From positions 248,001 to 312,000 of the IMG/VR virus record IMGVR_UViG_3300042308_001511: a DNA stretch of 64,000 nt; one strand, 5' to 3'. The translations under genes and the position numbers were made by a program. Positions 5,278-63,953 of this stretch are shown in pieces. Position 1 is the stretch's first letter; each line of letters begins with the position of its first letter. The notes under the pieces were generated by a model, which saw only the letters and a list, made by a program, of their open reading frames with translations, ran no database searches and had not been told where the DNA came from.

Positions 5278-5673
5278 TTATTCTATTCCTAATTTTTCAA
5301 GTCTGACGTCACGCCAATCTTGTGTATTCTTTTGATCCACCACCATATCCACTGATTCACTATAATAACCATTCGATTCTCCAAACCATCTAATAGTAAC
5401 CCAACCTTTTATAGTTGCAAAACGATAAAAGGTCCAGGTTGCACTTTCATATTTACCAGTAACATCAACATTTGAACTTTCTTCACAGACAATAAGTGGT
5501 GAACCTTCGAGATCCGATAAGTCACCACAAATATCATCTATCGTAACAGACTCACAACAATCCTGACTATGCATAAATGTGTATATCCTACCATCTTCGC
5601 AATACATAACAATACTTTCGTCAATACACCTGACCGCGAACATCGTTAATCCAACTAAATCATTTACCATCAT
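5278..5673 (-). CDS. Conserved phage protein (DUF7448-like), C-tag
   Basis: QDCCESV..DICGDL..TWTFY..IRWFGESNGYYSE; ends WRDVRLEKLGIE. Confidence 0.65.
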   Translation of the reverse strand: MMVNDLVGLTMFAVRCIDESIVMYCEDGRIYTFMHSQDCCESVTIDDICGDLSDLEGSPLIVCEESSNVDVTGKYESATWTFYRFATIKGWVTIRWFGESNGYYSESVDMVVDQKNTQDWRDVRLEKLGIE

Positions 5674-5694
5674 TTTTTTGTTTATGCTACGTTG

Positions 5695-6384
5695 TTATGC
5701 TACGTTGGTAACCATATAAGTTGCCATCGCTTCCCATCTATCTGGAAAATTTACAGCCATCTTAGTTACCATTATAAACATCCTCATATTTATAGATACT
5801 TTATCTTTTACAGAATCTAAGAAGTTTAAAGCTTCTATTTTTATTTCTCTGCAGTATTCTGGAAGAACGTTGTCTATTATTGCACTCATTCGTTCAACTT
5901 TATCTTCTGGTGACATAGATAAATCTACCACAAGACTTCTCGAAAGAACTGCTTGGTCAAGTGAAGACTTCTTTTTATTTGATATAAAAATTATACGACC
6001 GTTGAATTTGAACTTATTCGGATACTCGTCAGATTTGTTCATTTTAGACATCCATGTAATCTCTCTTTCATCATATGAATCAAGTGCAGACTTAAGTATG
6101 TTGATTGCAACTTTGTCCTCTAACACAGAATCACAATCGTCGAAAATAATAACCTTACCGTTGTTATCATAAAGAGAGTTGTAAAGACCTCTGGCAGTTG
6201 AATAACCTTTGAAGAAAACATACTCTTGTTCCTCCATACCACATTCAACTAACGCATTCTTTATAGAATACGATTTTCCCAAGCCCCCTTCCCCCGTCAC
6301 AATCAGCGATGGTGAAACACCCATTATAACCATCTTAGCCAAATCTCCTAAAAACCCAAATCTTTTGTTTATCTCAAATTCCAT
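5695..6384 (-). CDS. AAA+ family ATPase
   Basis: Walker A GEGGLGKS, Walker B IIFDDCD, IIFISN sensor, LSRS arginine finger. Confidence 0.85.
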   Translation of the reverse strand: MEFEINKRFGFLGDLAKMVIMGVSPSLIVTGEGGLGKSYSIKNALVECGMEEQEYVFFKGYSTARGLYNSLYDNNGKVIIFDDCDSVLEDKVAINILKSALDSYDEREITWMSKMNKSDEYPNKFKFNGRIIFISNKKKSSLDQAVLSRSLVVDLSMSPEDKVERMSAIIDNVLPEYCREIKIEALNFLDSVKDKVSINMRMFIMVTKMAVNFPDRWEAMATYMVTNVA

Positions 6385-6453
6385 ACGTTCCTTATTTGTT
6401 ACACTACAAATATAACAAAACTAAATAACAAAACAATAAAACAATAAAACAAT

Positions 6454-6912
6454 TTATAGCGACTCGTAAACAAAATCCGCTGCTGTACACGGTGCCGAAG
6501 TAGCGAGTTGATCACACCTTTCATTGAGTTCAGTACCTACGTGACCTTTTACCCAATTTATCTTTACTGACTTTAATCTCCTCGAAACCGAAAGGTATTC
6601 CTTCCATAAATCAGGGTTTTTCTTACCACTAAATCCTTTCTTTTCCCAACCGAATACCCAACCCTTCATCACAGAGTCACAAACGTATTTAGAGTCGGTA
6701 TAGACAACTACATCTAAATCTTGACGAGTTATCGCCCTTAGACCTTCGATAGTGGCAGTAAGTTCCATCCTATTATTTGTTGTCATCCTGAAACCACCAC
6801 TTAGTTCTTTACGTTTCCCTTTCCAACAAAGAACCACGCCCCATCCACCAGGACCGGGATTTCCTCTGGATGATCCGTCTGTCCAGACTTCTACTTTAGA
6901 TTCTTTTTCCAT
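6454..6912 (-). CDS. rnhA: Ribonuclease HI
   Basis: WTDGSSRGNPGPGGWG, TTNNRMEL, YTDSKYV, KNPDLW, WVKGH, NERCDQLA. Confidence 0.97.
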   Translation of the reverse strand: MEKESKVEVWTDGSSRGNPGPGGWGVVLCWKGKRKELSGGFRMTTNNRMELTATIEGLRAITRQDLDVVVYTDSKYVCDSVMKGWVFGWEKKGFSGKKNPDLWKEYLSVSRRLKSVKINWVKGHVGTELNERCDQLATSAPCTAADFVYESL

Positions 6913-6947
6913 ATTATATTTTTGTATTTAAACTCATAAAATAATTA

Positions 6948-7673
6948 CTAAAAGGGAAGGTAATCGTCGTTGTTGTAGGTTATTGGTTCCTTACCATGCT
7001 CTGTCACGAACTCTATCTCTTCCAGTTCCAGTACTGCGTGTATCCTTAGGTCTCTTATACTATCGTATCCTTTCAGTGGCTTCCATCCACGAGAGTCTAG
7101 CTTCCACGTCCTGGCGTTTGTCCTATCTGTTCGCATCTTACCGGAGTAGTTCGTTTGGTAGTGCATCGTCTGACAGTGAAGCACTGCTTCAGGGTGGTTC
7201 TCATAAAGTTTTTCACCATCCCAACTAACACCACAACACGAGATGTCCACGTTCTGAACGACTGCTGCGATTGGGTTATCTGCTGTAAATCCTGTAGGTC
7301 TTATGAGTTGAACAATCGCCATATTCTTCGGATTGAGCCAGGTCCTGGGTTCGTCGATTATCTTAAGGTTTTTGTACATCGCACCTAGGTCCTTCCCAGT
7401 GAGATTCTCCATATAAACGAATCCTTTAGAATGTAGAACTGCCTCTGCAGTGTGTAACATCTTCGAACCGAGTACTATATCAACATCATGTATATCTTGC
7501 TCGGCAATTGAATCTCTTATAGCACCACCGAAGATGCGTATGAACGGTTCTCCGACGATCTGACGGAACTTCGCAACAGTCCTGGGTATTCCTTCCACTA
7601 TTATTTTTTTTGGTCTTAGAAGTTCGTTAGAATCGAATCCAAGGTAGTCATCTAATCTTTTCTTTATGTCCAT
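6948..7673 (-). CDS. Nucleotidyltransferase (poly(A) pol/CCA head-domain-like)
   Basis: IFGGAIRD..DVDI and VDISCCG motifs; C-tag-like IRDLRIHAVL near the C-terminus. Confidence 0.7.
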   Translation of the reverse strand: MDIKKRLDDYLGFDSNELLRPKKIIVEGIPRTVAKFRQIVGEPFIRIFGGAIRDSIAEQDIHDVDIVLGSKMLHTAEAVLHSKGFVYMENLTGKDLGAMYKNLKIIDEPRTWLNPKNMAIVQLIRPTGFTADNPIAAVVQNVDISCCGVSWDGEKLYENHPEAVLHCQTMHYQTNYSGKMRTDRTNARTWKLDSRGWKPLKGYDSIRDLRIHAVLELEEIEFVTEHGKEPITYNNDDYLPF

Positions 7674-8177
7674 CTACTTAAGCATTTTTATTATCTTTTC
7701 TTTTATTCCGCTCTGTTTTATACCTTCATTCATTTTCTTTGTGTGTACAAAGTTTTTCAAAGCAGAAAGATCCATATCATCAATTGCGACCCACTTAACA
7801 ACGTGTGGGTTTTTTTCTAACCATTCATTTATTTCACCGACACGTAGCTCTGGTGACTTAAATGATGAGTGATGGTTTGGTGTGCAATCAATTGGTTGTT
7901 TGTAAACACCATAGTCTGTGAACATCTGTTTTAATTCTTCTAAACTACAATAAAGTTTCCAATCAGAAGAAACTACTATATCTGCACCAGTTTCTTCAAT
8001 TATAGTGTTTAGAATTTTCACCGCTTTGATATCAAAGTTGTCCATTTTGACCGACGCTGGTGCAGGAACATCAGGATTTTCAAGATTCCAACGTTTTATT
8101 TTTTTGGCACGAGTACCCCATTGCATAGCAAGGCATACGACACCATCATTGTCTAGAAATATTATCTTGTCGTTCAT
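7674..8177 (-). CDS. HAD-superfamily protein (Swiss-army RNA-repair-like HAD)
   Basis: IFLDNDGV, IVVSSDWK, WVAIDD. Confidence 0.8.
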   Translation of the reverse strand: MNDKIIFLDNDGVVCLAMQWGTRAKKIKRWNLENPDVPAPASVKMDNFDIKAVKILNTIIEETGADIVVSSDWKLYCSLEELKQMFTDYGVYKQPIDCTPNHHSSFKSPELRVGEINEWLEKNPHVVKWVAIDDMDLSALKNFVHTKKMNEGIKQSGIKEKIIKMLK

Positions 8178-10286: not shown

Positions 10287-10724
10287 TTAACTTCTATCTA
10301 ATAATCCATTTATTCTAATTTCTCTCAACAAATATTTCATCTCATCATCGTGTGAGTGTTCCCATTCATCCATAACCTGCCTTATTTTGGGATGAAGTCC
10401 GTTGTAAGAAAAATCGTGAGTATCATCCCATTCAGTACCTTTGAACTTCTCTATTATAAGTAATGGCGTCATTTTTTTCTGAATACTCTGAATAAGTTGT
10501 ATATGTCCAGCAACCAGGTCGAAGTTTGACCATCTATCACACCATTTAGTCTTAATATAAGAATCGATGAAATCGGTTGTTATTGCAGGTGGTTTAGAGT
10601 TTCCAAAATAAGAGTGCCACTTCTCCAATATGTAAGTAGCATCCATATCCTCAACCTTACTACCCATAAGGCGATTGAAGTGGAAAGCGAACCTTAACAT
10701 ATTGTATAATCTATTCTCTGTCAT
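10287..10724 (-). CDS. C-tag hypothetical protein
   Basis: ends LLREIRINGLLDRS. Confidence 0.65.
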   Translation of the reverse strand: MTENRLYNMLRFAFHFNRLMGSKVEDMDATYILEKWHSYFGNSKPPAITTDFIDSYIKTKWCDRWSNFDLVAGHIQLIQSIQKKMTPLLIIEKFKGTEWDDTHDFSYNGLHPKIRQVMDEWEHSHDDEMKYLLREIRINGLLDRS

Positions 10725-11091
10725 TTCCTAATATTTTTTCAATTGCATTATCTCTATTAACCATTTTTAGCCAATTGTCGTCCGGTCTTAGTACTAACGG
10801 AGGAAAGGTTCCATCCTGTACCGACTTAATATTTGCGATGTTCCAGTTTCTTCGTGTCTCAACCGAGTAGTATGTCATGTGTTCAGAGTATCCTGTAATT
10901 GTGTATCCTTCCTGCCAGAAACCAGTGTGATCCTTTCTTAGACACATCATACCAATTGGGTACCACTTCTCTAATATTGCGAGTTGTATATCCATTGGTG
11001 AATTGTTAAACCTCTGTAACTGAGACCTCAATTCATTTTTTTCGAACTGGTAGTCCCACTTATTTAGAGCTCTTTTTCCGAATGTGCTCAT
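10711..11091 (-). CDS. C-tag hypothetical protein
   Basis: ends NRDNAIEKILGNDRE. Confidence 0.65.
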   Translation of the reverse strand: MSTFGKRALNKWDYQFEKNELRSQLQRFNNSPMDIQLAILEKWYPIGMMCLRKDHTGFWQEGYTITGYSEHMTYYSVETRRNWNIANIKSVQDGTFPPLVLRPDDNWLKMVNRDNAIEKILGNDRE

Positions 11092-11445
11092 TTATTCATC
11101 ATCTAATAGTTCGTCAATCTTTTTGTCTCTGATTTCCTGTGCAGTGTTGTTTGATCCGGTCTCCCACTTCACTTTGTACTCCTCGATGAATTTTCGGCCG
11201 TCCTCGACGGTGTCGAATTTCTTGCCGTACGATTCTATGCTGTCGTATGTGGCGTCTACATACCTTCCGCAAATGTCTTCTGTGAGGCATATAGTACCGT
11301 TGGCTTTGTTATAATATGATATGACGTGGTATGTCCAAAGCACCTTCGCGGTGTTGAATATCCCGTATACACCTAATTGTATGTCGTTCGAATTAGTTTT
11401 ATAGTCCTTCGGGTGGGTTGTGTATAACATCTTACCTTTGTACAT
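11092..11445 (-). CDS. C-tag hypothetical protein
   Basis: ends IRDKKIDELLDDE. Confidence 0.65.
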   Translation of the reverse strand: MYKGKMLYTTHPKDYKTNSNDIQLGVYGIFNTAKVLWTYHVISYYNKANGTICLTEDICGRYVDATYDSIESYGKKFDTVEDGRKFIEEYKVKWETGSNNTAQEIRDKKIDELLDDE

Positions 11446-13988: not shown

Positions 13989-14019
13989 AAAGTATATATT
14001 ATGAATGCAACTTATATTT

Positions 14020-14313
14020 TTATAATATTCCCAGGTCCCTAAGTTTTTTGTCTCTTTGCTCTTCCTTGCTGAGTTTGCACTGATACCAAGTCCCGTTTGT
14101 GTGTTTTTTTTCCTTCGTACCACACTTCGTACAGTATCTTGTTTTGAAGATTTGCTTTATGGGTTGTTTCGTGCCGATGTGAATACCGAGTTCTTCTACC
14201 TGTGAAGAGTACACCCAGTCGTGTCTGTGCGTCGCTGCTCGGTATATTTCCACCACGTTCACGATTGCGATGTAGATAGCACTGTTTCGTATGAGGTTCA
14301 TTATGTGTTTCAT
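14020..14313 (-). CDS. C-tag hypothetical protein with CxxC
   Basis: ends QRDKKLRDLGIL; RYCTKCG. Confidence 0.65.
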   Translation of the reverse strand: MKHIMNLIRNSAIYIAIVNVVEIYRAATHRHDWVYSSQVEELGIHIGTKQPIKQIFKTRYCTKCGTKEKKHTNGTWYQCKLSKEEQRDKKLRDLGIL

Positions 14314-14348
14314 ATTCCTAGTACATCGATTGTTTGTTCTTTTCTCAT
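14310..14348 (-). CDS. 12-aa minigene MRKEQTIDVLGI (C-tag only)
   Basis: ATG at 14348 overlaps the upstream TGA; its TGA overlaps the ATG at 14313. Confidence 0.55.
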   Translation of the reverse strand: MRKEQTIDVLGI

Positions 14349-14632
14349 ATTCCGAGATTTTTTAACGTTTCATCTCTCTTCCATGCCAATATTGTAGATT
14401 CGTCGGTATTGGCATAGTCTTCCCACCATTCGATTCCTCTCTTCGTCTCATTCCAGTTAAACGAGCGCGAAATGAAATCTTGGAAGTCATGACGCCACCA
14501 AGTAAAAAATGTTTCTAAACTTGTTCCCTGTTTCACATGATATGACCTATTGAATTCCTGTAGCCATTCCTCTTGCATATCTTTTGTCATCAGACTATGA
14601 TAATACGAACCTTGTTCCCTCTTTTTAATCAT
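14345..14632 (-). CDS. C-tag hypothetical protein
   Basis: ends KRDETLKNLGI. Confidence 0.65.
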   Translation of the reverse strand: MIKKREQGSYYHSLMTKDMQEEWLQEFNRSYHVKQGTSLETFFTWWRHDFQDFISRSFNWNETKRGIEWWEDYANTDESTILAWKRDETLKNLGI

Positions 14633-14853
14633 ATTCCAATCTCCTTAAGCCTTTCTTCTCTGTGCTCGTAAATGTGCTTGAAGTCCGATTTTTGTCGTAT
14701 CCTGTCTTTTTCGTCCTCGCAGGTGACGATGACGAGTTTTGGTCCTATCTCAAGGTCGGGGCAGTCCGTTGTCTCGTATGTCCTTCCGGTCTTCAGCAGC
14801 CAGTTGCCGTCAACGTCTATCAGGTCGTGCTTCGATATCATCGTCTCGTTCAT
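14629..14853 (-). CDS. C-tag small beta-barrel-like protein (paralog of 58063..58302)
   Basis: Start reassigned to coupled ATG (MNETMISKHD); shares ISKHD..DGxW..YETxDCP..GPKLVIVTCED; ends HREERLKEIGI. Confidence 0.7.
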   Translation of the reverse strand: MNETMISKHDLIDVDGNWLLKTGRTYETTDCPDLEIGPKLVIVTCEDEKDRIRQKSDFKHIYEHREERLKEIGI

Positions 14854-15131
14854 ATTCCCAGTTCTTTCATTCTTTCCTCGCGGTGCTCTACGATTACATC
14901 GTTCAGGTTCTTTAGGTATCTCCACCCGGTTATCGCGTAGTCATGTATTTCAGAATCATTTGTAAAAACATATACCCATATTATGTTTTTACTTCCGACG
15001 TTCAGGTTTTCAGAATTCTCGTGGATTTTTATACTCAACACTTTAGTGCCTTTACTTTCACCGTTCTCGTTGATTATCTGTTGAGCACTACGCATCAGTG
15101 CCTCCTTCTGAAAGTTATCCATGAGTTCCAT
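14850..15131 (-). CDS. C-tag hypothetical protein
   Basis: ends HREERMKELGI. Confidence 0.65.
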   Translation of the reverse strand: MELMDNFQKEALMRSAQQIINENGESKGTKVLSIKIHENSENLNVGSKNIIWVYVFTNDSEIHDYAITGWRYLKNLNDVIVEHREERMKELGI

Positions 15132-15820: not shown

Positions 15821-16054
15821 CTATTCACCAAGTACCTTTTCAATCCTGTGATCACGTCGCTCGTCCTTATCCCACGGTTCAGCGTATATCTTTCCGTCCT
15901 CAATATAAATCTCCCACTCTTTTCCGGTCTTCCTGTCATGAAGCACAAGGTTTCCGAGCACACACTTACCATCTGCCCTTATCGTGTCAGGTTGGTATTG
16001 TCCTATTGTAGTAGGTCCTGGTGGTATGAAAATGTTTGCACTATTTATTGCCAT
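15821..16054 (-). CDS. C-tag hypothetical protein
   Basis: ends RRDHRIEKVLGE. Confidence 0.6.
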   Translation of the reverse strand: MAINSANIFIPPGPTTIGQYQPDTIRADGKCVLGNLVLHDRKTGKEWEIYIEDGKIYAEPWDKDERRDHRIEKVLGE

Positions 16055-16116: not shown

Positions 16117-16746
16117 ATGTCTGTTTTTACTAAAAAGGAGTGGCTAGGTTTCTCTATGTGGTGGTTTCTATGTCTTATAAAGAAAAACATCGCCAAATCG
16201 ATTTGCCTAGTGATACTAATCATCATTTACCCGTTTCTGAATTGTTATCCTGATAAGATAGATAGGGACTTTGTTGATCACCAATACAAAAGTGGTGACC
16301 TTAATGTCTACGTTACCGTTGAGAAAAAAAACAGCAATCTTGATTATGATGTACGAACTTCTGTAAAACCAATCAAACTTAAAGGAAGATATATTGTGGA
16401 AAAAGAATGGGATGACACGAACTTAATATTGTGGATACCGTTTGTGATTGGTGTTATTATGCAGTTGGTCGGTCTTTTCGCTAAGAGTGATGATGACCTA
16501 AACTGGGAACTCGACGTCGTCTTCGCCCGTGCAATATCTCGTTTCGTAAGATGTGAGATTGAGGAAGGTCATTACCATTACTTTGTCGGTAACAGGTACA
16601 TAGGTGAGTTCGAACAAAGTATGAACGACTATGACTACATCGGTAGAAAACTATACATTAACTCATTCACGAAGATACTTTGTATGCCAATCTGGAAGAC
16701 TAAGACATCGAAGAGAAGTGATAAGTTGGAAGAATTAGGTATTTAG
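16117..16746 (+). CDS. C-tag membrane protein
   Basis: Two hydrophobic segments; ends KRSDKLEELGI; TATATTCG at 16094-16101. Confidence 0.65.
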   Translation: MSVFTKKEWLGFSMWWFLCLIKKNIAKSICLVILIIIYPFLNCYPDKIDRDFVDHQYKSGDLNVYVTVEKKNSNLDYDVRTSVKPIKLKGRYIVEKEWDDTNLILWIPFVIGVIMQLVGLFAKSDDDLNWELDVVFARAISRFVRCEIEEGHYHYFVGNRYIGEFEQSMNDYDYIGRKLYINSFTKILCMPIWKTKTSKRSDKLEELGI

Positions 16747-22844: not shown

Positions 22845-22931
22845 ATCTCGTTTCAGCTACGTTACTATCATTCAAAGGATAACCTCCTCTTTCTCGAAGT
22901 CTACGTGAATGAAACACCAAAAAAAAATAAA

Positions 22932-23147
22932 ATGGAAGACATTACACTCTACAAACTCATAAAACAAACCTTTATCGAAGAAAACCCCACTGCCACCGTA
23001 CACGACGTCAGAGAAACCGCATACGACTCTATACTAATAATGTACACAACACCAGAATCATCACCCAAACTAAACATAAAAACAATAGAAACAACCCAAG
23101 CACTTGCCTGGGTCCGAGAAAAAAGACTAGGAGACATAGGACTCTAA
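22932..23147 (+). CDS. C-tag hypothetical protein
   Basis: ends VREKRLGDIGL; start moved to the first ATG. Confidence 0.6.
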   Translation: MEDITLYKLIKQTFIEENPTATVHDVRETAYDSILIMYTTPESSPKLNIKTIETTQALAWVREKRLGDIGL

Positions 23148-41705: not shown

Positions 41706-41712
41706 CTTTCTA

Positions 41713-43634: not shown

Positions 43635-43635
43635 A

Positions 43636-45453: not shown

Positions 45454-46004
45454 ATCCCAAGACTTGATATTTTATCGTCTCTCTTTCCCTCTACGTCCAG
45501 GTACCCTTCTTTTTTCATTAGCCTTTCTACGAATTCTCGTTTTCTCTTACGTTCTTCTTTTTCTGCTATCTCGTCTTTGTATCTGGTATCAAGGTATTTC
45601 TTTATGGTCTCCATTAAGCTGTATTTGTCTAGGTCGAATTTGCCTATTTCTTTACAGGAGAAGATACCTTGTTTCACCAATAGTCCTTCTAACTCGTCTT
45701 CGTCGATGATTAGTTCAAACTCTCCCATAGTAGAGTGGTACAGTCTCTTTCTCTTTTGAAATGAAATCATAAAGAAAGCGGTGAAGATTATTCTTCCACT
45801 ATCCTCAAAGAGTTTGTTTGTGACTCCACCTAAAAAGAGCATCATAACGGTTATTAGGATTCCTATAATAGACATTCCTATAACTGCACCAATAGTGACT
45901 TCGAATTTGGTTTCTTGTGCCATAGCGTATATAAGGCCTATGGCAGGAGCTGTTACGAATGCTATTCCAATTAGTGTGAATATTAATCTTTTTAAGTGTC
46001 TCAT
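45450..46004 (-). CDS. C-tag membrane protein
   Basis: 2-3 TM segments; ends KRDDKISSLGI. Confidence 0.65.
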   Translation of the reverse strand: MRHLKRLIFTLIGIAFVTAPAIGLIYAMAQETKFEVTIGAVIGMSIIGILITVMMLFLGGVTNKLFEDSGRIIFTAFFMISFQKRKRLYHSTMGEFELIIDEDELEGLLVKQGIFSCKEIGKFDLDKYSLMETIKKYLDTRYKDEIAEKEERKRKREFVERLMKKEGYLDVEGKRDDKISSLGI

Positions 46005-46167: not shown

Positions 46168-46659
46168 TTAAATACCAATCTCCAACAATTTTTTATCTCT
46201 TCTTATTTGGACATAGTCGAAGTATTCATCGATTACCCTTACGGTGTGTTCGAACGCCGGCTTACCTCTGAGGTGGTTGTTTCTCGCTTCGCTTATCGCA
46301 GCACCCATCTTATAGAACTCTTCATATGAAGTTAAACAAAATGCTACGGTATGTACATCATCACCTTTTATAATTGCGTGTGGTACCATCACTTCTTTCA
46401 CATAAAGTCGTTTTACTTCTTCTATCGTCAGATATCCAGGTATGACCTCGTGAAGGTTCTCTTTGGTATATCCTTTTCTGATCCATTCTCTAGCTCCGGC
46501 TATGAGCTTGGTCTTTTCCCAGTACCTGTCGTAGTCTGTTATGAATTCGACTTTTCTTTGTATTATACCAATAACATCATATTCTTTCCCTTCTTCGAAG
46601 ATTGTTCCACCCGTAAAAGAATGATTGATCATTTTTTCGTTAGTACATCTCAGTCTCAT
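46168..46659 (-). CDS. C-tag hypothetical protein
   Basis: Coupled start MRLRCT..EGKEYDV; ends RRDKKLLEIGI. Confidence 0.65.
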   Translation of the reverse strand: MRLRCTNEKMINHSFTGGTIFEEGKEYDVIGIIQRKVEFITDYDRYWEKTKLIAGAREWIRKGYTKENLHEVIPGYLTIEEVKRLYVKEVMVPHAIIKGDDVHTVAFCLTSYEEFYKMGAAISEARNNHLRGKPAFEHTVRVIDEYFDYVQIRRDKKLLEIGI

Positions 46660-46871
46660 ATCCCAATCTCTTTTAGTTGCAGCTCTCGCCATTCTTCTGG
46701 CGTCCAGAACCAGGTTCCTATGAAATCAACGCCTTTGGCTATTTTGAGTCCATAGAACCATTTCTTTTGGTCTTTCTCTCGTATAATCATAATGGCGTTT
46801 TGTACATAAACACCTTCATATACTTCACCTTTTCTGAAACCATTGTGAGTATGTTTACATATTAGTTTCAT
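46656..46871 (-). CDS. C-tag SH3-like protein
   Basis: Coupled start MKLICK..KGEVYE; ends WRELQLKEIGI. Confidence 0.65.
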   Translation of the reverse strand: MKLICKHTHNGFRKGEVYEGVYVQNAIMIIREKDQKKWFYGLKIAKGVDFIGTWFWTPEEWRELQLKEIGI

Positions 46872-47185
46872 AGAGGCATTGTTATTTGTTGACCTTCTTC
46901 GAAATCGATATCGGTTATGAACTCTACTTTGATCCAATCTTCTGTATAGTGTCTTTGATATTCTTCTTTGACTTCTCCTATGAAATCGTGTTCGACCCAT
47001 CTATAGTCTTTTATCTGTAGCCCCTTAGTGATAATATTTACTTTGAGTGGCTTCCAATCTGGATTGACCAGGTTTATATCGGTGATGATGGCTTTGATAG
47101 GTGTATCAACGTCAGGGAACTTTATAGTCACCTGACGCTTGCCGTTGGCTATCTCCTGGAGGAGCTGGTTGAATGAGTATTCCAT
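46868..47185 (-). CDS. Hypothetical protein
   Basis: 105-aa ORF. Confidence 0.55.
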   Translation of the reverse strand: MEYSFNQLLQEIANGKRQVTIKFPDVDTPIKAIITDINLVNPDWKPLKVNIITKGLQIKDYRWVEHDFIGEVKEEYQRHYTEDWIKVEFITDIDFEEGQQITMPL

Positions 47186-49677: not shown

Positions 49678-50031
49678 TTATTCGAGAACCAGGTCAATCT
49701 TCAACTCTCTAATCTCTTCGTCTGTTAGAGCTCCTATTTGTGCCACTCGGTCTAATATAATCTTTTCTAAATCAGTGGCCAAGCGTACTTCACGGTCGTA
49801 CACAGAGACTCTTTTTCCACTCAAATAAGGATAGGTGTTTTGACCGTCTTTTCTGAGGAACTCATTACTGGACTTCCGCCACATATGGTTCATATTACTG
49901 AAGGTCAATCCAAATACTAACGCGTTGGCAAAATCATCGTTCTGTGTGGTGTAAGGTCGTATAAGGCACCAGCTACCATCGTGTTCGTCGGTGATGAGGT
50001 ATGTCTCGTCTTTTATGAATGTTCTTTTCAT
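49678..50031 (-). CDS. C-tag hypothetical protein (paralog of 56217..56553)
   Basis: ends IRELKIDLVLE. Confidence 0.65.
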   Translation of the reverse strand: MKRTFIKDETYLITDEHDGSWCLIRPYTTQNDDFANALVFGLTFSNMNHMWRKSSNEFLRKDGQNTYPYLSGKRVSVYDREVRLATDLEKIILDRVAQIGALTDEEIRELKIDLVLE

Positions 50032-50324
50032 ACACCCAGTTCTTTAAGTCTTTCTTCTCTTATATGTTGTAAGTATTCCGCGAGAGGATAAATTACGCCC
50101 CAACTGTTAGACCACGATGTATTGGCTTCGTTGCTGTAGTCTCTATCCCATTCTCTAGGAAATCGAACTTCGAATCTCGGTCCGACGCCGTGTGGTCCTT
50201 CAGATATCTTTTTAACAATTCCTTCGACACCGATGAATCGTTCCTTAGATTCGGTCCAATCTAGGTTTGCCGAGTTTAGTTCGTGGAATCTGAATCCTTT
50301 TACTTTACTGCCTTTCTCTATCAC
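50028..50324 (-). CDS. C-tag KGFxF-family protein
   Basis: GTG start after tandem promoters at 50333-50349; KVKGFRF..GVEG..IYP; ends IREERLKELGV. Confidence 0.65.
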   Translation of the reverse strand: MIEKGSKVKGFRFHELNSANLDWTESKERFIGVEGIVKKISEGPHGVGPRFEVRFPREWDRDYSNEANTSWSNSWGVIYPLAEYLQHIREERLKELGV

Positions 50325-50353
50325 TTTTTTTACAAATATAACAAATATAAGAA

Positions 50354-50548
50354 TCATTCTGTAACCTTTATTATGTCGTTCGAAAAATAATCGCTAACTT
50401 TTTCTTCCTCTCCATATGGTCTGAAGTAAAGAAGACCGTCTCTTTTGTAGATCCTGTGTTGACCCGCTTGTTGTACATCTACCAGGTCTCCATCCGCGAG
50501 TTCGTTGTCGAACTTGTCTATACATTTTATTTTCATGTTGTCTCTCAT
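50354..50548 (-). CDS. Hypothetical protein
   Basis: 64-aa ORF. Confidence 0.5.
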   Translation of the reverse strand: MRDNMKIKCIDKFDNELADGDLVDVQQAGQHRIYKRDGLLYFRPYGEEEKVSDYFSNDIIKVTE

Positions 50549-51941: not shown

Positions 51942-52199
51942 TTAGATTCCTAGTTGATTGAGTTTGTTTTCTCTCATCTCTACCGCGAAGTAATTTTTGA
52001 GTATTTCTCTGTCGTGAAATTGAATGTTCTTGTGAGTTATCTCGACCGTTTCTAATGGATCTGGATTGTAGTCGCTGTATGTTAGTTCGTAGTCAATGAA
52101 TCTAATATATATTCGCCATCGATCGTAATTGAATCTACCAGAGTTCTTTACGACCTCTTTAAACCCTATGCTTTTTATTTCTCTTATTAGGTCTTCCAT
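51942..52199 (-). CDS. C-tag hypothetical protein
   Basis: ends MRENKLNQLGI. Confidence 0.65.
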   Translation of the reverse strand: MEDLIREIKSIGFKEVVKNSGRFNYDRWRIYIRFIDYELTYSDYNPDPLETVEITHKNIQFHDREILKNYFAVEMRENKLNQLGI

Positions 52200-52945: not shown

Positions 52946-53221
52946 TTACCTCATCTCTATTTCCTCTAATGATACAACGTTCACCTCTGCCAGTGTGTGG
53001 TATTTTGCCCACTGCTCTATGTAGATGCCACGCATCGGATCATCATCATCGTTTAGTTTCTCGTCAATCTCGCGGTAGTATTCTTTCACTTTCACTAAGA
53101 GTTTGTTTGCCTTTTCTACGTAGGCAAGTGCGAGTTCTTTGTCATTGGTTACGAACAGGTTACCTCTGTGGAAGTCGTCCCAACTTCCGCTTGTGTATGT
53201 TATTATGTACATATTTTTCAT
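52946..53221 (-). CDS. Hypothetical phage protein
   Basis: Coupled start MKNMYIITY; GSWDD. Confidence 0.55.
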   Translation of the reverse strand: MKNMYIITYTSGSWDDFHRGNLFVTNDKELALAYVEKANKLLVKVKEYYREIDEKLNDDDDPMRGIYIEQWAKYHTLAEVNVVSLEEIEMR

Positions 53222-53469
53222 TGTATTTCTAATTTGTTCAATTGTCTTTCTCTCCACTCTTTTTGTGTGTAAAATCTTTCTTCAATATCACCGCCGACCC
53301 AATGTGGAATACCATCTCCGTTTGTATTTTTTATGATGCTACCTGGCCCGTCTACGAAAGTAATTTCATACATATCACCTGGTATGAAATGGTATTCATA
53401 AGACCCTCCGGTTTTACCATATAGTGCGGTATAGGGTTTATTAACATAGATTATATCTCCTACTTTCAT
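53218..53469 (-). CDS. C-tag SH3-like protein
   Basis: ends WRERQLNKLEIQ. Confidence 0.65.
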   Translation of the reverse strand: MKVGDIIYVNKPYTALYGKTGGSYEYHFIPGDMYEITFVDGPGSIIKNTNGDGIPHWVGGDIEERFYTQKEWRERQLNKLEIQ

Positions 53470-53807
53470 ATTCCTAGTTCTATTAGTCTCTGTTCTCGTA
53501 TCTCACGGAGATACTCTTTTATAGGATAGCACCATTTCCTTGGCGGCACTTCCTCTAAACGATAATCTCCTTCATTCGAACTTGATAATACTAATCTTTC
53601 AATTTCCTCATCAGGAAGGATTTCGAATTGTATGGTTATGTAGTTTTCATTCGGTGTTCTGGATTCGTATACTATTTCTACTATTGATCCCTCGCGACCG
53701 ATGTATTTCTCCATACGTTGATCCCAGTACATATTCGAAGAGTTTTTCTTATTTGTGAACCTGAACCCTTTTGCTTTTTGTCCTAACTCTAGTGTACCTA
53801 CTTTCAT
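53466..53807 (-). CDS. C-tag KGFxF-family protein
   Basis: GQKAKGFRF..GREG..WCYP; ends IREQRLIELGI. Confidence 0.7.
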   Translation of the reverse strand: MKVGTLELGQKAKGFRFTNKKNSSNMYWDQRMEKYIGREGSIVEIVYESRTPNENYITIQFEILPDEEIERLVLSSSNEGDYRLEEVPPRKWCYPIKEYLREIREQRLIELGI

Positions 53808-54004
53808 ATCCCCAGTTCTTCCAGCTGTTTCTCTCTCCACTTATTCATTGGTATTACCGTTCTTATATTATGCCAGGTAAAATAACCTTTATCATCAACT
53901 ATTTTATAGTCAAAATAAGTTTGGTCGATAACGTCATATGCCTTACCATAGGTGAGGTTCGTAGTTGTGCCGTAGCTGATCTCGCTTATACAAACAACTT
54001 TCAT
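53804..54004 (-). CDS. C-tag SH3-like protein (LTYGKxY family)
   Basis: MKVVCI..LTYGKAYDV; ends WREKQLEELGI. Confidence 0.7.
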   Translation of the reverse strand: MKVVCISEISYGTTTNLTYGKAYDVIDQTYFDYKIVDDKGYFTWHNIRTVIPMNKWREKQLEELGI

Positions 54005-54005
54005 T

Positions 54006-54401
54006 TCATTTCGTTTTTGTAATCTCTTTGTCGAAGCAGTATAGAGCATCCAGAACCTCTTTCTTTGTGTCGAAGTTGTTCCATTCGTTGAAGTAATCGA
54101 AAACACACCCGTCTACGCCGTCTGCGTAAATAGATACTTCCCACCACTTTGTCTCACACTCTTCGTTGAATATATCCACCGTGAAGTTCTTGCCGTGGTA
54201 TGTGTACCACCCAATCCCATTTTTGGTCACTTTGATACCGTCTTCTTTCAGGATCTCACCGAAAGACTTTGGCTTACACAGCTTGGCCCACTTCTTCGCT
54301 AGTTTGTCGTACTGAGATTTATAGTCAGTGTAGTTCATCTTACCTGCTTTATAGTCTTCACCAAGTGTCAGAATGTTTTGTTTTATTTCTTCGTGTGTCA
54401 T
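54006..54401 (-). CDS. Hypothetical protein
   Basis: Start MTHEEIKQ after TATATTTG at 54420-54427. Confidence 0.6.
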   Translation of the reverse strand: MTHEEIKQNILTLGEDYKAGKMNYTDYKSQYDKLAKKWAKLCKPKSFGEILKEDGIKVTKNGIGWYTYHGKNFTVDIFNEECETKWWEVSIYADGVDGCVFDYFNEWNNFDTKKEVLDALYCFDKEITKTK

Positions 54402-56563: not shown

Positions 56564-56800
56564 TTATTCAATTCCAATTTCTTTTAGTTTAAGTTCCCTG
56601 AACTCTTCCTGTGTCACGAACCTAGTTCTTAGGTAGTCATTGCTTATACCCATATCGTTGATGAGCGTGTAGAATCTTATGTGATATGTTTCGATTACGT
56701 AGTATGTCTTCCCATAGGTAAGCTCTTGACCTCCATTTTGTCCGAATTTGAGTATGTCGGTCTCGCAGTCTATGCAGACGAGTGGTTTTCCTTTCATCAT
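56564..56800 (-). CDS. C-tag SH3-like protein (LTYGKxY family)
   Basis: LVCI..LTYGKTYYV..INDMG..RF; ends FRELKLKEIGIE. Confidence 0.7.
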   Translation of the reverse strand: MMKGKPLVCIDCETDILKFGQNGGQELTYGKTYYVIETYHIRFYTLINDMGISNDYLRTRFVTQEEFRELKLKEIGIE

Positions 56801-57722: not shown

Positions 57723-58049
57723 TCATAGTATAAGTTCGATCCTGGCGTCTCGTTTTTCTTGTTCGGTCACTTTATGCTTAACGAACCTTTCTTCGAATTT
57801 CCTTGCGTTTTCTTCGTCATCGTTGTGATACTCGATCCAGTGTGAGTTATTTGTGCTATATCTGAATCGTTCTTCGAGTTCATTCGAACTTGCATACTTC
57901 ATCACTGCCCAGTTCGTTATAACTCCCTGTATGGTGGTTATCTGTCCGTTTTCTGCGATGTGAATGACACATAGCCAGTAGCTAAGCATCTCACTGAACA
58001 TAGAACCTCTCTTTGGGTTAAGCAGTGCGTTTTTGGTTTTGTTTTCCAT
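57723..58049 (-). CDS. C-tag hypothetical protein
   Basis: ends KRDARIELIL. Confidence 0.65.
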   Translation of the reverse strand: MENKTKNALLNPKRGSMFSEMLSYWLCVIHIAENGQITTIQGVITNWAVMKYASSNELEERFRYSTNNSHWIEYHNDDEENARKFEERFVKHKVTEQEKRDARIELIL

Positions 58050-58062: not shown

Positions 58063-58302
58063 TTAGATTCCGAGTGAATCGATCCTCTGTTCTCTGTATT
58101 CTGCCATATCCATAAAGTCTGACCTGCGGCGGACCCTGTATTGACCGTCTTCACAGGTGACGATGACAAGTTTTGGTCCTAGCTCACCAGTTGGTGTGTA
58201 CGTTGAAGGGCAGTCTGATGTCTCGTAAGCCTTTCTAGCTTTCATTAACCATACTCCGTTACCATCCTTCCAATCGTGTTTGGATATCATTATATCGTTC
58301 AT
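58063..58302 (-). CDS. C-tag protein (paralog of 14629..14853)
   Basis: ends YREQRIDSLGI. Confidence 0.7.
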   Translation of the reverse strand: MNDIMISKHDWKDGNGVWLMKARKAYETSDCPSTYTPTGELGPKLVIVTCEDGQYRVRRRSDFMDMAEYREQRIDSLGI

Positions 58303-58514
58303 ATTCCTAGTTTTTCCAGTACGAGTTGTCTTTTTTCCACAGTTGATATGAATAGTTCTCTATCGTATATTGCATAGTCGGTTTCGCCGTTTCCCCAGTA
58401 TATTGCGTAGTAGTTTACTCTATCCACCGCATCGTACCATTCGCCAATCTTTATGTCGGTGTGATAGCCGGATCTGTTTGATACACACTGAACTTTTATC
58501 CTCTGTCGTTTCAT
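58299..58514 (-). CDS. C-tag SH3-like protein
   Basis: VQCVSN..IGEWYDA; ends KRQLVLEKLGI. Confidence 0.65.
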   Translation of the reverse strand: MKRQRIKVQCVSNRSGYHTDIKIGEWYDAVDRVNYYAIYWGNGETDYAIYDRELFISTVEKRQLVLEKLGI

Positions 58515-58777
58515 ATTCCGAGTTCTTTTATCTTTTGGTCTCTTAGTCGTATTTTGTATTCGTCGAGATTTATGGTGATGTCTTTTTTATAGGTGAAATG
58601 TTTCTTCATACCTTGTACGTTCTTTATGATAGTAAAGTAATAGTTCACCATTAGTAAGTCTTCGGTAAAGTCTAATTGTATTTCGTAGATTTTATCGATG
58701 ACTATTTTATCTCTTTCTATCGTAGGCTCTTTTTCGGTTATAAAGTCCTTTATCAGTTCGTTGTCGTATTCGATCAT
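58511..58777 (-). CDS. C-tag hypothetical protein
   Basis: ends LRDQKIKELGI. Confidence 0.65.
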   Translation of the reverse strand: MIEYDNELIKDFITEKEPTIERDKIVIDKIYEIQLDFTEDLLMVNYYFTIIKNVQGMKKHFTYKKDITINLDEYKIRLRDQKIKELGI

Positions 58778-59028
58778 TCTATTCCTAGTTCATCGAGTTT
58801 TCTGTCTCTTTGTCTCTGTGCCTCGCTGAGGTTGATTAGTCGGCCTCTTGTGTGTGAATTTGGGCTGTGGAAGTTTTTGTTGTGACTCGACGTCCACGGT
58901 ATGTCGAGCTCGCTGGACCAAATCCATATTCTATCGTACGTGAAGTTCTTGTCGTCGAGTTCCTCTATCGTGAACGTCTTTTCTGGCTGTGTTTCCCAGT
59001 ACACGAGGTCTCCTACCTGGTAGTTCAT
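58774..59028 (-). CDS. C-tag SH3-like protein
   Basis: YQVGDLVYW; ends QRDRKLDELGIE; TATATTCG at 59088-59095. Confidence 0.65.
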   Translation of the reverse strand: MNYQVGDLVYWETQPEKTFTIEELDDKNFTYDRIWIWSSELDIPWTSSHNKNFHSPNSHTRGRLINLSEAQRQRDRKLDELGIE

Positions 59029-62969: not shown

Positions 62970-63027
62970 TAACTGGTTTTGGTGTATAGTTTATAATATA
63001 TAGTTTATAAAAAAAAATAAATCTACG

Positions 63028-63237
63028 ATGATAAAATTGAAGAAGTTTGAGGAGTTGGATTACGAACAGCTTAGAGACCAAACGAATAGAGACTTCCACG
63101 GAAGTAAATCAGATACTGTTGAATATCCGGATGTTAGGAATATGAATAGGGATGAGTTGAAGGACTATCTTGAAACTATTGGTGTTCCATCAAACATACT
63201 CGATGAAACTGTGGATAATATACTTAGTGCACTATAA
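63028..63237 (+). CDS. N-tag small protein
   Basis: MIKLKKFEEL; TAATATATAG at 62994-63003. Confidence 0.6.
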   Translation: MIKLKKFEELDYEQLRDQTNRDFHGSKSDTVEYPDVRNMNRDELKDYLETIGVPSNILDETVDNILSAL

Positions 63238-63238
63238 T

Positions 63239-63270
63239 AAAAATACCTTCCAATTGGAAGGTATTTTTTT
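63239..63270. terminator. Bidirectional terminator
   Basis: AAAAATACCTTCC-AATT-GGAAGGTATTTTT between convergent genes. Confidence 0.85.
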
Positions 63271-63700
63271 ATTCAAATGTTACTATTTTTCCTATAAATA
63301 CACAATGTTTATTATATTTTGATTTCTCACCAGTTTCCACATTCACCACAAAAAATGCTTCTTTAGATTCTTTGGCATCGTACATCTCGTACTCTGTCAT
63401 ACCTTCAAAGTTTATTACTTCAAGATAACAATTCTTTGGAATTGCCATTCCTGATATGATTTTACCATCTGTTGATTTCACATATATTTTGTTTGTACTT
63501 TTTCTATACACAACGAAGAAGTCTGCACCATAACCTAATATTTGCTTATCATCATCTATTGTCTCCACAAAAAGTGTCTTACCTGTCTCAGAACTAACTA
63601 TTGCGGTCTGGTAGTCGTCTAGCTCGTCTAAATATATTTCACTTTGTGCACTTACCAGTGTAGATAAGAATAGTAATGTGATTGTGATAATGTTTCTCAT
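63269..63700 (-). CDS. Secreted hypothetical protein
   Basis: Signal peptide MRNIITITLLFLSTLVSA; TATATTCG at 63718-63725. Confidence 0.6.
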   Translation of the reverse strand: MRNIITITLLFLSTLVSAQSEIYLDELDDYQTAIVSSETGKTLFVETIDDDKQILGYGADFFVVYRKSTNKIYVKSTDGKIISGMAIPKNCYLEVINFEGMTEYEMYDAKESKEAFFVVNVETGEKSKYNKHCVFIGKIVTFE

Positions 63701-63749
63701 AGTAGTTTTCGTTTCTACGAATATACTAAATTTTTATCAATTACGGTCT

Positions 63750-63953
63750 TTATATTCCTAATTCTTCTAATTTCAAGTCTCTTAGCATTTTGTACTTCCA
63801 TTCTATGTATTCACTATCCATATAATGGAAAACAAGTGTTTCCAGGAATACGAAGAATCCTTCAGGTGTCAGTTCACATATTTTCTCACATGCGTATAGG
63901 TTTGAACCCATAGAGAAATTGATGTAATAGTCGGTAGGCTCAAATGGTGCCAC
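63750..63953 (-). CDS. C-tag hypothetical protein
   Basis: ends LRDLKLEELGI. Confidence 0.65.
   Translation of the reverse strand: MAPFEPTDYYINFSMGSNLYACEKICELTPEGFFVFLETLVFHYMDSEYIEWKYKMLRDLKLEELGI

Follow-up and report, generated by a model that had tools for sequence, protein, structure and literature searches.

The analyzed window, a 64,000-nucleotide stretch (positions 248,001 to 312,000) of IMG/VR record IMGVR_UViG_3300042308_001511, is part of a 344-kb contig of an uncultured jumbo phage that probably has a Bacteroidota host. About a third of its genes, almost all encoding small proteins of unknown function, end in the same short peptide, a predicted 10-residue helix. In the window, 32 open reading frames (ORFs) end in [aromatic/aliphatic]-R-[DE]-x-[KR]-[LI]-x-x-[LI]-G-[ILV], here called the G-type tail. 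Six more ORFs end in a Gly-less dialect, R-[DE]-x-K-[LI]-x-x-[IL]-[IL]-x, here called H-type, although two of these are weak candidates. The total is 38 of about 120 ORFs. Two of the tails lie on the plus strand and the rest on the minus strand, as do most genes.

Tailed open reading frames in the window. Family A is the MKIGD..KGF family and family B the SH3-like family; LR745206 is phage LR745206.1.
Position	Strand	Length (aa)	Tail	Tag position	Remarks
5278..5673	-	131	WRDVRLEKLGIE	5284-5313	DUF7448 body
10287..10724	-		REIRINGLLDRS		H-type; orthologue in LR745206 also tailed
10711..11091	-		RDNAIEKILGNDRE		H-type; orthologue in LR745206 also tailed
11092..11445	-		RDKKIDELLDDE		H-type
14020..14313	-	97	RDKKLRDLGIL	14026-14055	
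14345..14632	-	95	KRDETLKNLGI	14348-14377	
14629..14925	-		REERLKEIGI	14632-14661	start uncertain, overlaps the next ORF
14850..15131	-	93	REERMKELGI	14853-14882	
15821..16054	-		RDHRIEKVLGE		possible H-type (weak)
16117..16746	+	209	RSDKLEELGI	16714-16743	hydrophobic segments; orthologue in LR745206 also tailed
22905..23147	+	80	REKRLGDIGL	23115-23144	
31506..31757	-	83	RESNLNQIGI	31509-31538	
37562..37681	-	39	REDKLKELGM	37565-37594	short ORF
38528..38782	-	84	REMKLKELGL	38531-38560	family B
40722..40979	-	85	REDKLKELGIR	40728-40757	family A
40976..41203	-	75	REEKLKQLGI	40979-41008	
41200..41430	-	76	RERRLKELGI	41203-41232	family A
41427..41732	-	101	REEKLKELGI	41430-41459	family A
42021..42362	-	113	REEKLKEIGI	42024-42053	
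42359..42637	-	92	REERIKELGI	42362-42391	family B
43332..43667	-	111	RHERINELGI	43335-43364	family A
45139..45453	-	104	RDCRLSEIGI	45142-45171	
45450..46004	-	184	RDDKISSLGI	45453-45482	N-terminal hydrophobic helices
46168..46692	-	174	RDKKLLEIGI	46171-46200	50% identical orthologue in LR745206 ends RDKKLKELGIC
46656..47000	-	114	RELQLKEIGI	46659-46688	
49678..50031	-		RELKIDLVLE		possible H-type (weak)
50028..50357	-	109	REERLKELGV	50031-50060	family A
51942..52199	-	85	RENKLNQLGI	51945-51974	TAA stop, convergent neighbor
53218..53469	-		RERQLNKLEIQ		near-G variant, 18.5 bits; orthologue in LR745206 ends RNMKLEKIL
53466..53840	-	124	REQRLIELGI	53469-53498	family A
53804..54106	-	100	REKQLEELGI	53807-53836	family B
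56564..56800	-	78	RELKLKEIGIE	56570-56599	family B, SH3-like, modeled
57723..58049	-		RDARIELIL		H-type
58063..58302	-	79	REQRIDSLGI	58066-58095	orthologue in LR745206 has H-type tail RENRINNILDNE
58299..58514	-	71	KRQLVLEKLGI	58302-58331	
58511..58777	-	88	RDQKIKELGI	58514-58543	
58774..59028	-	84	RDRKLDELGIE	58780-58809	
63750..63953	-	67	RDLKLEELGI	63753-63782	

Occurrence and distribution of the tail

The sequence-only reading that prompted this analysis had reported that about 41 unrelated proteins share one C-terminal tag, and this observation is confirmed, with stronger support than was first given; the total of 38 is close to that count. A regular expression for the tail finds 29 window ORFs. 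A position matrix built only from sequences outside the window gives 32 window ORF ends a score of 14.5-37 bits, whereas the best of 31,257 internal positions scores 7.4 bits. The strict motif is C-terminal in 25 of 25 window occurrences, and in 408 of 419 occurrences over all fetched loci, with 11 internal. Of the 402 distinct tailed proteins collected from the window and the fetched loci, 92% stop exactly after the final Ile/Leu/Val. The degenerate DNA pattern matches six times in the window and not once in 100 shuffles.

The claim that the bodies carrying the tail are unrelated is only partly right, because many are paralogues. The 29 regular-expression hits fall into 18 BLAST clusters, including a six-member MKIGD..KGF family and a five-member SH3-like family. 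Truly different bodies also exist: the DUF7448 protein (5278-5673) and two proteins with hydrophobic segments (16117-16746 and 45450-46004). None of the recognizable enzymes checked (RNase H, LOG, two DNA methyltransferases, HAD/PNK) carries the tail, as had been claimed. The carriers are almost all proteins without a recognizable domain: 0 of 70 tailed proteins of the 634-kb phage LR745206.1 and about 1 of 60 others have a genuine Pfam domain.

The same tail is found on 120 of about 970 ORFs of LR745206.1, against 0.65 expected from shuffles, and in more than 120 metagenome stretches, many of them aquatic. It is absent from phage T4 and essentially absent from 185,000 cellular genomes, although the same 10-mer ends two ordinary cellular enzyme families, a YgjP-like peptidase and aldehyde:ferredoxin oxidoreductase, as a plain terminal helix. 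The LGI ending is one dialect of a wider R-[DE]-x-K-hydrophobic-x-x-hydrophobic-hydrophobic tail spread across a clade of large AT-rich phages. Both dialects coexist in LR745206.1 (94 Gly-less tails and 21 with Gly), and H-type tails replace G-type tails in orthologues. Six of six tailed window proteins have tailed orthologues in LR745206.1 at 25-50% identity, sometimes in the other dialect, and nine of nine untailed proteins have untailed orthologues. We found no description of the tail in Pfam, PHROGs, the PDB or the literature searched.

Selection on the peptide and on the underlying RNA

Is it the peptide or the nucleic acid that is conserved? The sequence-only reading had proposed selection on the peptide because codons vary synonymously, which is right but incomplete. 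Selection acts mainly on the peptide. Arg is 100% although Lys was allowed, and Gly is 100%; both the CTN and TTR Leu codon boxes, both AGR and CGN Arg codons, and all four Gly codons are used. The motif is equally conserved in the 79 ORFs that stop at TAA or TAG and cannot overlap a downstream ATG. However, third positions are biased towards A, with GGA at 70% against 32% in bodies and ATA at 93% against 48%, and synonymous divergence is reduced in the tail (pS 0.37 against 0.55). The genes sit in tightly overlapped (ATGA) arrays, and the 30 nucleotides encoding the tag double as the unstructured, A-rich translation-initiation region of the next, overlapping gene, which shapes the synonymous sites.

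The tail is modular. Most of the 120 best DUF7448 homologues, of 2,966 found, end shortly after the domain, whereas 18 of them carry the appended tail. The SH3-like body (DUF6501/DUF7244-like) occurs widely without any tail, including as tandem repeats, and tails also occur on proteins with hydrophobic segments. AlphaFold2 predicts a helix exactly on the motif in two unrelated folds, at residues 64-75 of 78 (56564..56800) and 118-128 of 131 (5278..5673).

A candidate docking helix and its alternatives

What might explain the recurrence of one ending on so many different small, phage-specific proteins? We tentatively favor a peptide module of about 11 residues, an amphipathic α-helix closed by a glycine C-cap and a final hydrophobic residue, [W/Y/F/L/I]-R-[D/E]-x-[K/R]-[L/I]-x-x-[L/I]-G-[I/L/V]-stop, with a Gly-less dialect that ends in two hydrophobic residues plus 0-6 more residues. 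In this view, one face of the helix (the invariant Arg, two Leu/Ile and the terminal Ile) would be read by one common partner, encoded by the phage or the host, and many different head domains would thereby be brought to the same place or fate, whether localization, assembly or turnover. The analysis itself establishes the existence and C-terminal position of the motif, peptide-level selection, modularity, retention of tail status between distant orthologues, a predicted helical structure, essential restriction to phages and the double role of the tag RNA, whereas the partner and any effect on localization or stability are inferred. The interpretation offered by the sequence-only reading, an adaptor library delivering many targets to one hub (protease, RNA polymerase or compartment) or a shared degron, is partly supported: the module, its peptide-level selection, its addition to different bodies and its absence from recognizable enzymes hold, but docking onto a hub and degron function remain conjecture without an identified partner. 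The high confidence of the helix in both AlphaFold2 models (pLDDT 86-95) could mean that it packs on its own body rather than being free to dock, the two cellular enzyme families show that the same 10-mer can be a plain terminal helix, the coexistence of both dialects in one genome weakens a strict one-receptor, one-code picture, and the nucleotide-level constraint is an additional complication.

Two alternatives remain possible, although we consider each less likely. The first is self-association, in which the tails bind each other in short helical bundles, so that tailed proteins would form homo- or hetero-oligomers or a shared assembly without a separate receptor. The helix is amphipathic, with Leu/Ile at i, i+3 and i+5 and often a further hydrophobic residue upstream, dozens of carriers are co-expressed from the same overlapped arrays, and both dialects coexist in one genome. 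However, eleven residues is short for a stable bundle, an invariant Arg on the hydrophobic face and an invariant Gly cap are not typical of zipper-type contacts, and there is no heptad continuity upstream.

The second, held with equally low confidence, is a standard gene-junction ending, in which the unit under selection would be the junction itself: a harmless, self-contained capped helix encoded by A-rich, unstructured RNA ending in ATATGA, which supplies the start of the next gene and its favorable context in a host that does not use Shine-Dalgarno sequences. The helix would cap or stabilize its own small protein, and the cassette would spread by recombination between junctions. Of the tagged ORFs, 74% end in ATATGA, against 21% ATGA in untagged ORFs, and 63% have an ORF of at least 40 amino acids starting at that ATG. 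GGA and TTA/CTA place A at -3 and -6 of the next start, which are positive determinants of initiation in Flavobacterium (PMC6847099). The junction RNA is the least structured class, with an MFE of -4.3, against -5.8 for untagged gene ends and -8.7 for internal windows, and 47% A. The reduced synonymous divergence and the confidently predicted helix also fit. However, tails at TAA or TAG stops, including those facing convergent genes (16117, 38528, 51942), keep the full motif while most of the codon bias relaxes. An initiation region constrains third codon positions only, and does not explain 100% Arg (never Lys, although AAA is richer in A), 100% Gly or the fixed order of residues. The body folds also exist without the tail, so capping is not needed for folding.

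It is improbable that all carriers descend from one small protein of which only the C-terminal helix stayed recognizable, an account of origin that is compatible with any of the functions above. Although 99 of 396 bodies fall in one BLAST cluster, several window families are tandem paralogues, and carriers are small and mostly rich in β-strands, 156 clusters and 91 singletons remain at E<1e-3, the tail is appended to DUF7448, a large family that mostly lacks it, and it occurs on proteins with hydrophobic segments and on proteins of up to 731 amino acids. Two unrelated folds, SH3-like and DUF7448, are already indicated. A pure nucleic-acid signal (a recombination linker, RNA-processing site or protein-binding site with the peptide as a by-product) is very unlikely and largely refuted by the codon data: despite non-random third positions, reduced pS and short DNA similarity between junctions seen by BLASTN, conservation follows codon periodicity with first and second positions fixed while Leu and Arg codon boxes interchange, the dialects replace each other in orthologues despite different DNA, the motif is frame-specific and always ends at a stop, and the RNA has no hairpin and is unusually unstructured.

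Comparison with known terminal signals

Encapsulin cargo-loading peptides are C-terminal tags that load unrelated cargo proteins into an HK97-fold shell, and resemble the tail in being about 10 residues long at the extreme C-terminus of unrelated proteins, with hydrophobic Leu/Ile anchors and a Gly, in a phage-related context. They are extended and Gly/Ser-rich, follow a flexible linker and occur on one to a few cargo genes next to the shell gene, whereas the tail is a charged helix that directly follows the last strand and occurs on 12-30% of all ORFs, with no known shell association. The degrons and adaptor tails of AAA+ proteases (ssrA tag, SspB XB tail) are likewise short C-terminal peptides shared by many substrates or adaptors, and 92% of G-type tails end in an apolar residue. 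However, the sequences are unrelated, orthologues and dialect tails tolerate 1-7 extra polar residues after the motif, and any protease link would be hypothetical. Eukaryotic sorting signals (PTS1 -SKL, KDEL) and LxxLL-type helical docking motifs resemble the tail as inferred here, a proteome-wide short terminal code read by one receptor, and the Gly-less dialect is literally hydrophobic-x-x-hydrophobic-hydrophobic within an amphipathic helix, but the organisms and the sequence differ and no receptor or compartment is known for the tail. In the Chimalliviridae, selective protein import into the phage nucleus (PMC11087766) also sorts part of a jumbo phage proteome. No linear targeting motif is known to have been defined for that pathway, no shell or import gene was seen in the window, and the lineage and host are different.

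The L-x-x-L-G-I ending fits the generic Schellman/αL glycine C-cap with hydrophobic staple, both AlphaFold2 models end the helix one residue before the Gly, and the same 10-mer ends two cellular enzyme families. A generic structural motif does not explain recurrence on about 30% of a proteome with an invariant Arg nine residues before the end. Conserved junction or linker sequences that promote module shuffling in phages, such as lambdoid linkers and T4-type PeSL cassettes, are also repeated at gene boundaries within arrays of small variable genes. Those elements are intergenic and conserved as DNA or RNA structure, whereas the tail lies inside coding sequence, is conserved as a peptide and is unstructured as RNA.

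Occurrence and distribution of the C-terminal tail

The sequence-only reading of the window had proposed that about 41 unrelated proteins share one C-terminal peptide, and that observation holds. A strict regular expression, R-[polar]-x-[KR]-[LIVM]-x-x-[LIVM]-G-[ILVM], finds 25 occurrences in all six frames, every one of them within three residues of a stop, and a slightly looser form gives 29 ORFs. A 14-column scoring matrix built only from tails found in other contigs gives 32 window ORF ends 14.5-37 bits, whereas the best of 31,257 internal positions reaches 7.4 bits. A fully degenerate back-translation of the commonest form matches 6 times in the window and never in 100 shuffles. Six further ORFs end in a Gly-less dialect, R-[DE]-x-K/R-[LI]-x-x-[IL]-[IL] plus a few residues, which we call H-type to distinguish it from the Gly-containing G-type. 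In total 38 of about 120 ORFs carry a tail, close to the number first proposed, and two of them are on the + strand. The description of the bodies as unrelated is only partly right: the 29 regex hits make 18 BLAST clusters, including a six-member family beginning MKIGD..KGF and a five-member SH3-like family (family B), although clearly different bodies are also present, namely DUF7448 and two proteins with hydrophobic segments.

The degenerate DNA pattern finds 13 loci on 8 IMG/VR contigs and more than 120 metagenome stretches, a lower bound, mostly freshwater and marine. Among one genome for each of 185,579 bacterial and archaeal species it finds only 8 single hits, most of which are not at ORF ends. 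The real ones are single C-termini of YgjP-like peptidases and an aldehyde:ferredoxin oxidoreductase, which end in exactly the G-type 10-mer (REKRLKEIGI, REEKLKELGI), and the sequence can therefore arise as an ordinary terminal helix. Over all fetched loci the motif is C-terminal 408 times and internal 11 times, and some contigs carry 3-4 tailed ORFs per kb. In 402 distinct tailed proteins (median 84 aa), counting from the last motif residue as 0, Arg occupies position -9 in 100%, Glu/Asp -8 in 83%, Lys/Arg -6 in 89%, Leu -5 in 91%, Leu/Ile -2 in 98%, Gly -1 in 100% and Ile 0 in 85%; weaker hydrophobic preferences appear at -10, -13, -15 and -16, and 92% of the proteins stop right after the last motif residue. 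In the complete 634,780-bp genome of the uncultured phage LR745206.1, read in 14 pieces, 120 of 969 greedy ORFs have a G- or H-type tail within six residues of the end, against 0.65 from within-protein shuffles. As a negative control, the first 50 kb of phage T4, which is rich in small early ORFs, has no C-terminal tail. Two other AT-rich phage contigs reached through DUF7448 homologues (L156 and L157) carry mostly the Gly-less dialect, on many small ORFs. We considered whether one dialect per genome might reflect co-evolution with a receptor, but this did not hold, because LR745206.1 mixes both.

The tail is modular. DUF7448 has 2,966 homologues in the database, and of the best 120 most end a few residues after the conserved ...SNGYYSESVDF, whereas 18 carry a short linker plus WR[DE]xRLExLGI[EKR], others carry Gly-less variants, and a few continue past the motif (...LGIYDEEDQL). 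A profile of the body of the largest tailed family, with the tail removed, hits 5,927 proteins, the top hits being tandem repeats of a DUF6501/DUF7244 domain (SH3 clan; PMC13164509) joined by Ala/Ser/Thr linkers and without tails; this very large DUF6501/DUF7244-like group includes proteins of up to 3,500 aa with 16-21 tandem copies. These folds therefore do not need the tail. Apparent fusions of two adjacent small ORFs also occur: in one protein (P0157) an SH3-like domain is followed by a degenerate tail remnant and then directly by MKVKCI... of a second domain, and a protein in the fetched locus L139 has an internal tail-like stretch (WRQKMLDEIL) in addition to a terminal one. Between the window and LR745206.1, all six tailed proteins that have an orthologue have a tailed orthologue, a G-type tail in the window corresponding to an H-type tail there in one pair, and all nine untailed proteins checked have untailed orthologues. 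Tailed proteins almost never have a recognisable domain, whereas untailed neighbours include RNase H, LOG, methyltransferases and RNA-repair enzymes.

Two models were computed by AlphaFold2 with family alignments. One is predicted to be an SH3-like barrel followed by a helix at residues 64-75 of 78 (mean pLDDT 84.6), and the other a beta-rich DUF7448 body, a five-residue loop and a helix at residues 118-128 of 131 (mean pLDDT 92.6). In both, the predicted helix covers the motif and by DSSP ends one residue before the invariant Gly. This fits a Schellman-type glycine C-cap with the last Ile folding back, as inferred from the sequence pattern. Arg(-9), Leu(-5) and Leu(-2) fall on one face, which may be either exposed or packed on the body.

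Peptide and RNA constraints on the tail

Is the tail conserved as a peptide or as a nucleic acid? Both constraints are evident, with the peptide primary. At the conserved Leu positions the CTN and TTR codon boxes are used about equally, Arg uses AGR and CGN, and Gly uses all four codons. The 79 tails that stop at TAA or TAG cannot overlap a downstream ATG, yet they keep the motif as well as the 292 that stop at TGA, and most of the codon bias relaxes there. Third positions are nevertheless biased towards A: GGA is 70% against 32% in bodies, ATA 93% against 48%, AAA 90% against 69% at one position, and YTA/TTA is enriched. Untagged gene ends show a weaker form of the same trend. Of the tagged ORFs, 74% end in ATATGA, and 63% have an ORF of at least 40 aa starting at that ATG. 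In that arrangement the third bases of the Gly and Leu codons fall at -3 and -6 of the next start, and A at -3 and -6 together with low mRNA structure are positive determinants of initiation in Flavobacterium johnsoniae, which does not use Shine-Dalgarno sequences (PMC6847099). The 60 nt around tagged junctions are the least structured RNA class in the window, with a mean MFE of -4.3 kcal/mol against -5.8 for untagged gene ends and -8.7 for internal windows, and the tag is 47% A. The junctions thus have the features of a Bacteroidota-type translation initiation region. A comparison of divergence in the tail and in the body had been set beforehand as a test of peptide-level selection, and in 80 homologous pairs the tail has half the non-synonymous divergence of the body (0.10 against 0.22), but also lower synonymous divergence (0.37 against 0.55). 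This comparison is partly circular, because both members of each pair were chosen for having the motif, and we rely more on the orthologue comparison and on the TAA/TAG subset. An initiation region constrains third codon positions only, and it cannot explain invariant Arg (never Lys), invariant Gly or the fixed order of residues. A Shine-Dalgarno role for GGA/GGG was rejected, since the spacing to the ATG is only 2 nt and Bacteroidota ribosomes ignore Shine-Dalgarno sequences (PMC6847099 and related papers), and recoding of TGA was rejected because the motif ends identically at TAA, TAG and TGA.

Comparison with recognition tags and possible roles

Database searches gave no family for the tail. 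Pfam and PHROGs scans of tagged proteins returned only DUF7448 and weak DUF6501/DUF7244 hits, all to bodies; a profile search of the PDB found nothing; Foldseek against the PDB found only generic SH3/Tudor matches at E of about 0.04; and the ESM Atlas returned only unnamed viral clusters and small SH3-like DUFs, the tail-only query scoring an uninformative 0.58. PHROGs scans of large ORFs of the window and of related loci gave no lineage hallmark and no hub candidate, and literature searches, including of a jumbo-phage review, found no description of the motif. The nearest concepts are the C-terminal cargo-loading peptides of encapsulins, degrons and adaptor tails of AAA+ proteases, eukaryotic terminal sorting signals, LxxLL-type helical docking motifs and generic glycine helix caps, and none fits as a family. 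Like an encapsulin cargo-loading peptide, the tail is a short tag at the extreme C-terminus of otherwise unrelated proteins, but it lacks the flexible Gly/Pro/Ser-rich linker and extended Gly-rich anchor, since positions -10 to -16 are hydrophobic or charged and the predicted helix starts 4-5 residues after the last strand; encapsulin peptides bind the inner face of an HK97-fold shell and are genetically linked to the shell gene, and there is no capsid gene in the window. With respect to C-terminal degrons of AAA+ or tail-specific proteases, where apolar residues at the free C-terminus are required, 92% of G-type tails stop at Ile/Leu/Val, while orthologues end ...LGIYDEEDQL and H-type tails carry 1-6 extra, often polar, residues. 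The reading as a PDZ class II ligand (hydrophobic-x-hydrophobic-COOH) was rejected: L-G-I fits in the G-type, but the interchangeable H-type and the extended tails do not. The type IX secretion C-terminal domain (PF18962) is a beta-sandwich of about 75 residues, whereas the tail is 10-12 residues and has no Pfam hit. The sequence features of an LxxLL-type amphipathic helix flanked by charged residues are present in the H-type consensus, R-D-x-K-[LI]-x-x-[IL]-L, the G-type having Gly in place of the fourth hydrophobic position. We therefore regard the tail as a candidate shared terminal recognition tag, an idea with precedents, that belongs to none of the families compared here and is unusual in its scale of 12-30% of a phage proteome.

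What the analysis establishes is a peptide-level, modular, phage-restricted C-terminal helix, its helicity being predicted, on a large class of small proteins, superimposed on the initiation region of the next gene. That the helix is read by something common is inferred, as would be any binding to a partner groove or tag-dependent degradation, and the interpretation of the sequence-only reading, an adaptor or address system, is accordingly only partly supported. We tentatively favour a shared partner, at less than even confidence, because the conserved positions are the same on unrelated bodies, the Arg is invariant, and tail status is kept across deep divergence; sorting, assembly, adaptor and degron versions of this idea are not distinguished by the present evidence. 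Self-association of the tails is less likely but possible, as is, to a similar degree, a standard junction ending that combines a harmless capped helix with an optimal restart context. The coexistence of both dialects in one genome and the high AlphaFold2 confidence for the helix keep these rivals alive. A pure nucleic-acid signal, such as a recombination linker or PeSL-like cassette, is largely excluded, since conservation is codon-periodic with interchange of codon boxes, the element lies inside the CDS, and it has the least RNA structure of all classes tested.

A more far-reaching possibility, which we consider unlikely but not excluded, is that huge and jumbo phages of an aquatic, AT-rich clade, including the 634-kb genome, use a proteome-wide C-terminal address code. 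In this view a capped amphipathic helix on more than 100 small phage-specific proteins per genome would be read by one receptor that would send them to a common destination: a phage-built compartment or assembly, the capsid interior, or a host hub such as a protease or the transcription machinery. The code would have lineage-specific dialects (...LGI, ...ILK), and it would be the first linear sorting or docking signal found in phage proteomes. Large phages devote much of their coding capacity to small proteins with no recognisable homologues and no known function, and a tail shared by 12-30% of such proteins gives a handle on them as a class: a single partner search with the peptide as bait could place more than 100 proteins per genome in one pathway. 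If the tail is an address or docking code, it would be a portable tag for Bacteroidota biology and a new principle of how phages organise the infected cell. Even under the more modest reading it is a clear natural case of dual coding, in which one 30-nt segment specifies both a conserved peptide and the initiation region of the next gene in hosts that do not use Shine-Dalgarno sequences. The motif is also a simple marker for recognising this uncultured phage clade in metagenomes.

Host, relatives and neighbouring genes

The window, at 38.6% G+C, matches two IMG/VR loci exactly, both from the 344,083-bp contig IMGVR_UViG_3300042308_001511. Three observations point to a Bacteroidota host. One protein carries a genuine type IX secretion C-terminal sorting domain and is apparently routed through the host T9SS. 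The octamer TATATTTG occurs 22 times against 4.8 expected, a number reached in 0 of 100 shuffles, and most copies lie in short intergenic gaps on the coding strand, upstream of gene arrays (window 6407, 10278, 15801, 22322, 23159, 43306, 46147, 54420 and 14 more); it fits the Bacteroidota -7 promoter box TAnnTTTG, although an explicit -33/-7 pattern was not enriched. Lastly, genes are packed with ATGA stop/start overlaps. About 18 window proteins have relatives at 24-56% identity in LR745206.1, but tblastn of two family B proteins against 50,697 GenBank phage records gave no hit, so no cultured relative is available.

Coordinates of features in the window and in related loci (window positions unless a locus is named)
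Position	Strand	Feature
39665-45089		Equal to IMG/VR locus L001
13557-21329		Equal to IMG/VR locus L005
5278-5673		Tailed protein with DUF7448 body, modelled (helix at residues 118-128)
56564-56800		Tailed protein modelled as SH3-like barrel (helix at residues 64-75)
58063-58302		G-type tail; H-type tail in the LR745206.1 orthologue
14629-14925	-	Tailed ORF; overlaps 14850-15131 by about 75 nt if the longest starts are used
14850-15131	-	Tailed ORF; overlaps 14629-14925 by about 75 nt if the longest starts are used
33516-34805	-	429-aa protein with type IX secretion C-terminal domain (PF18962, E 3e-7)
17450-19174	-	Large Cys-rich protein with DnaJ-type CXXCXGXG zinc-finger motifs
8754-10031	-	Large Cys-rich protein with DnaJ-type CXXCXGXG zinc-finger motifs
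20519-22273		Conserved 584-aa protein
6454-6912	-	RNase H, no tail
6948-7673	-	Weak polyA-polymerase-head match, no tail
7674-8177	-	HAD_SAK_2, no tail
12756-14123	-	PNK/ATPase plus HAD_SAK_1 protein, no tail
59169-60341	+	390-aa leucine-rich-repeat protein (LRR_4/LRR_8, E 1e-16), no tail
L139:1639-1965		Apparent fusion with internal and terminal tail-like stretches
L157:1514-2653		TnpB/Cas12f-like gene (OrfB_IS605 plus Cas12f1-like_TNB domains)

Of the two overlapping tailed ORFs, the downstream one probably starts at a later ATG (MNETMISKHD...), and its body is homologous to that of the ORF with the G-type tail whose LR745206.1 orthologue is H-type. The two Cys-rich proteins are both conserved in LR745206.1, at 24-30% identity, next to the conserved 584-aa protein. 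The RNase H, polyA-polymerase-head, HAD_SAK_2 and PNK/ATPase entries form an RNA repair and nucleic-acid metabolism cluster, and the leucine-rich-repeat protein is encoded on the minority strand. The TnpB/Cas12f-like gene lies inside L157, a 77-kb AT-rich phage contig that also encodes IF1-like, HU, RNA ligase, LOG, flavokinase and NADAR proteins.
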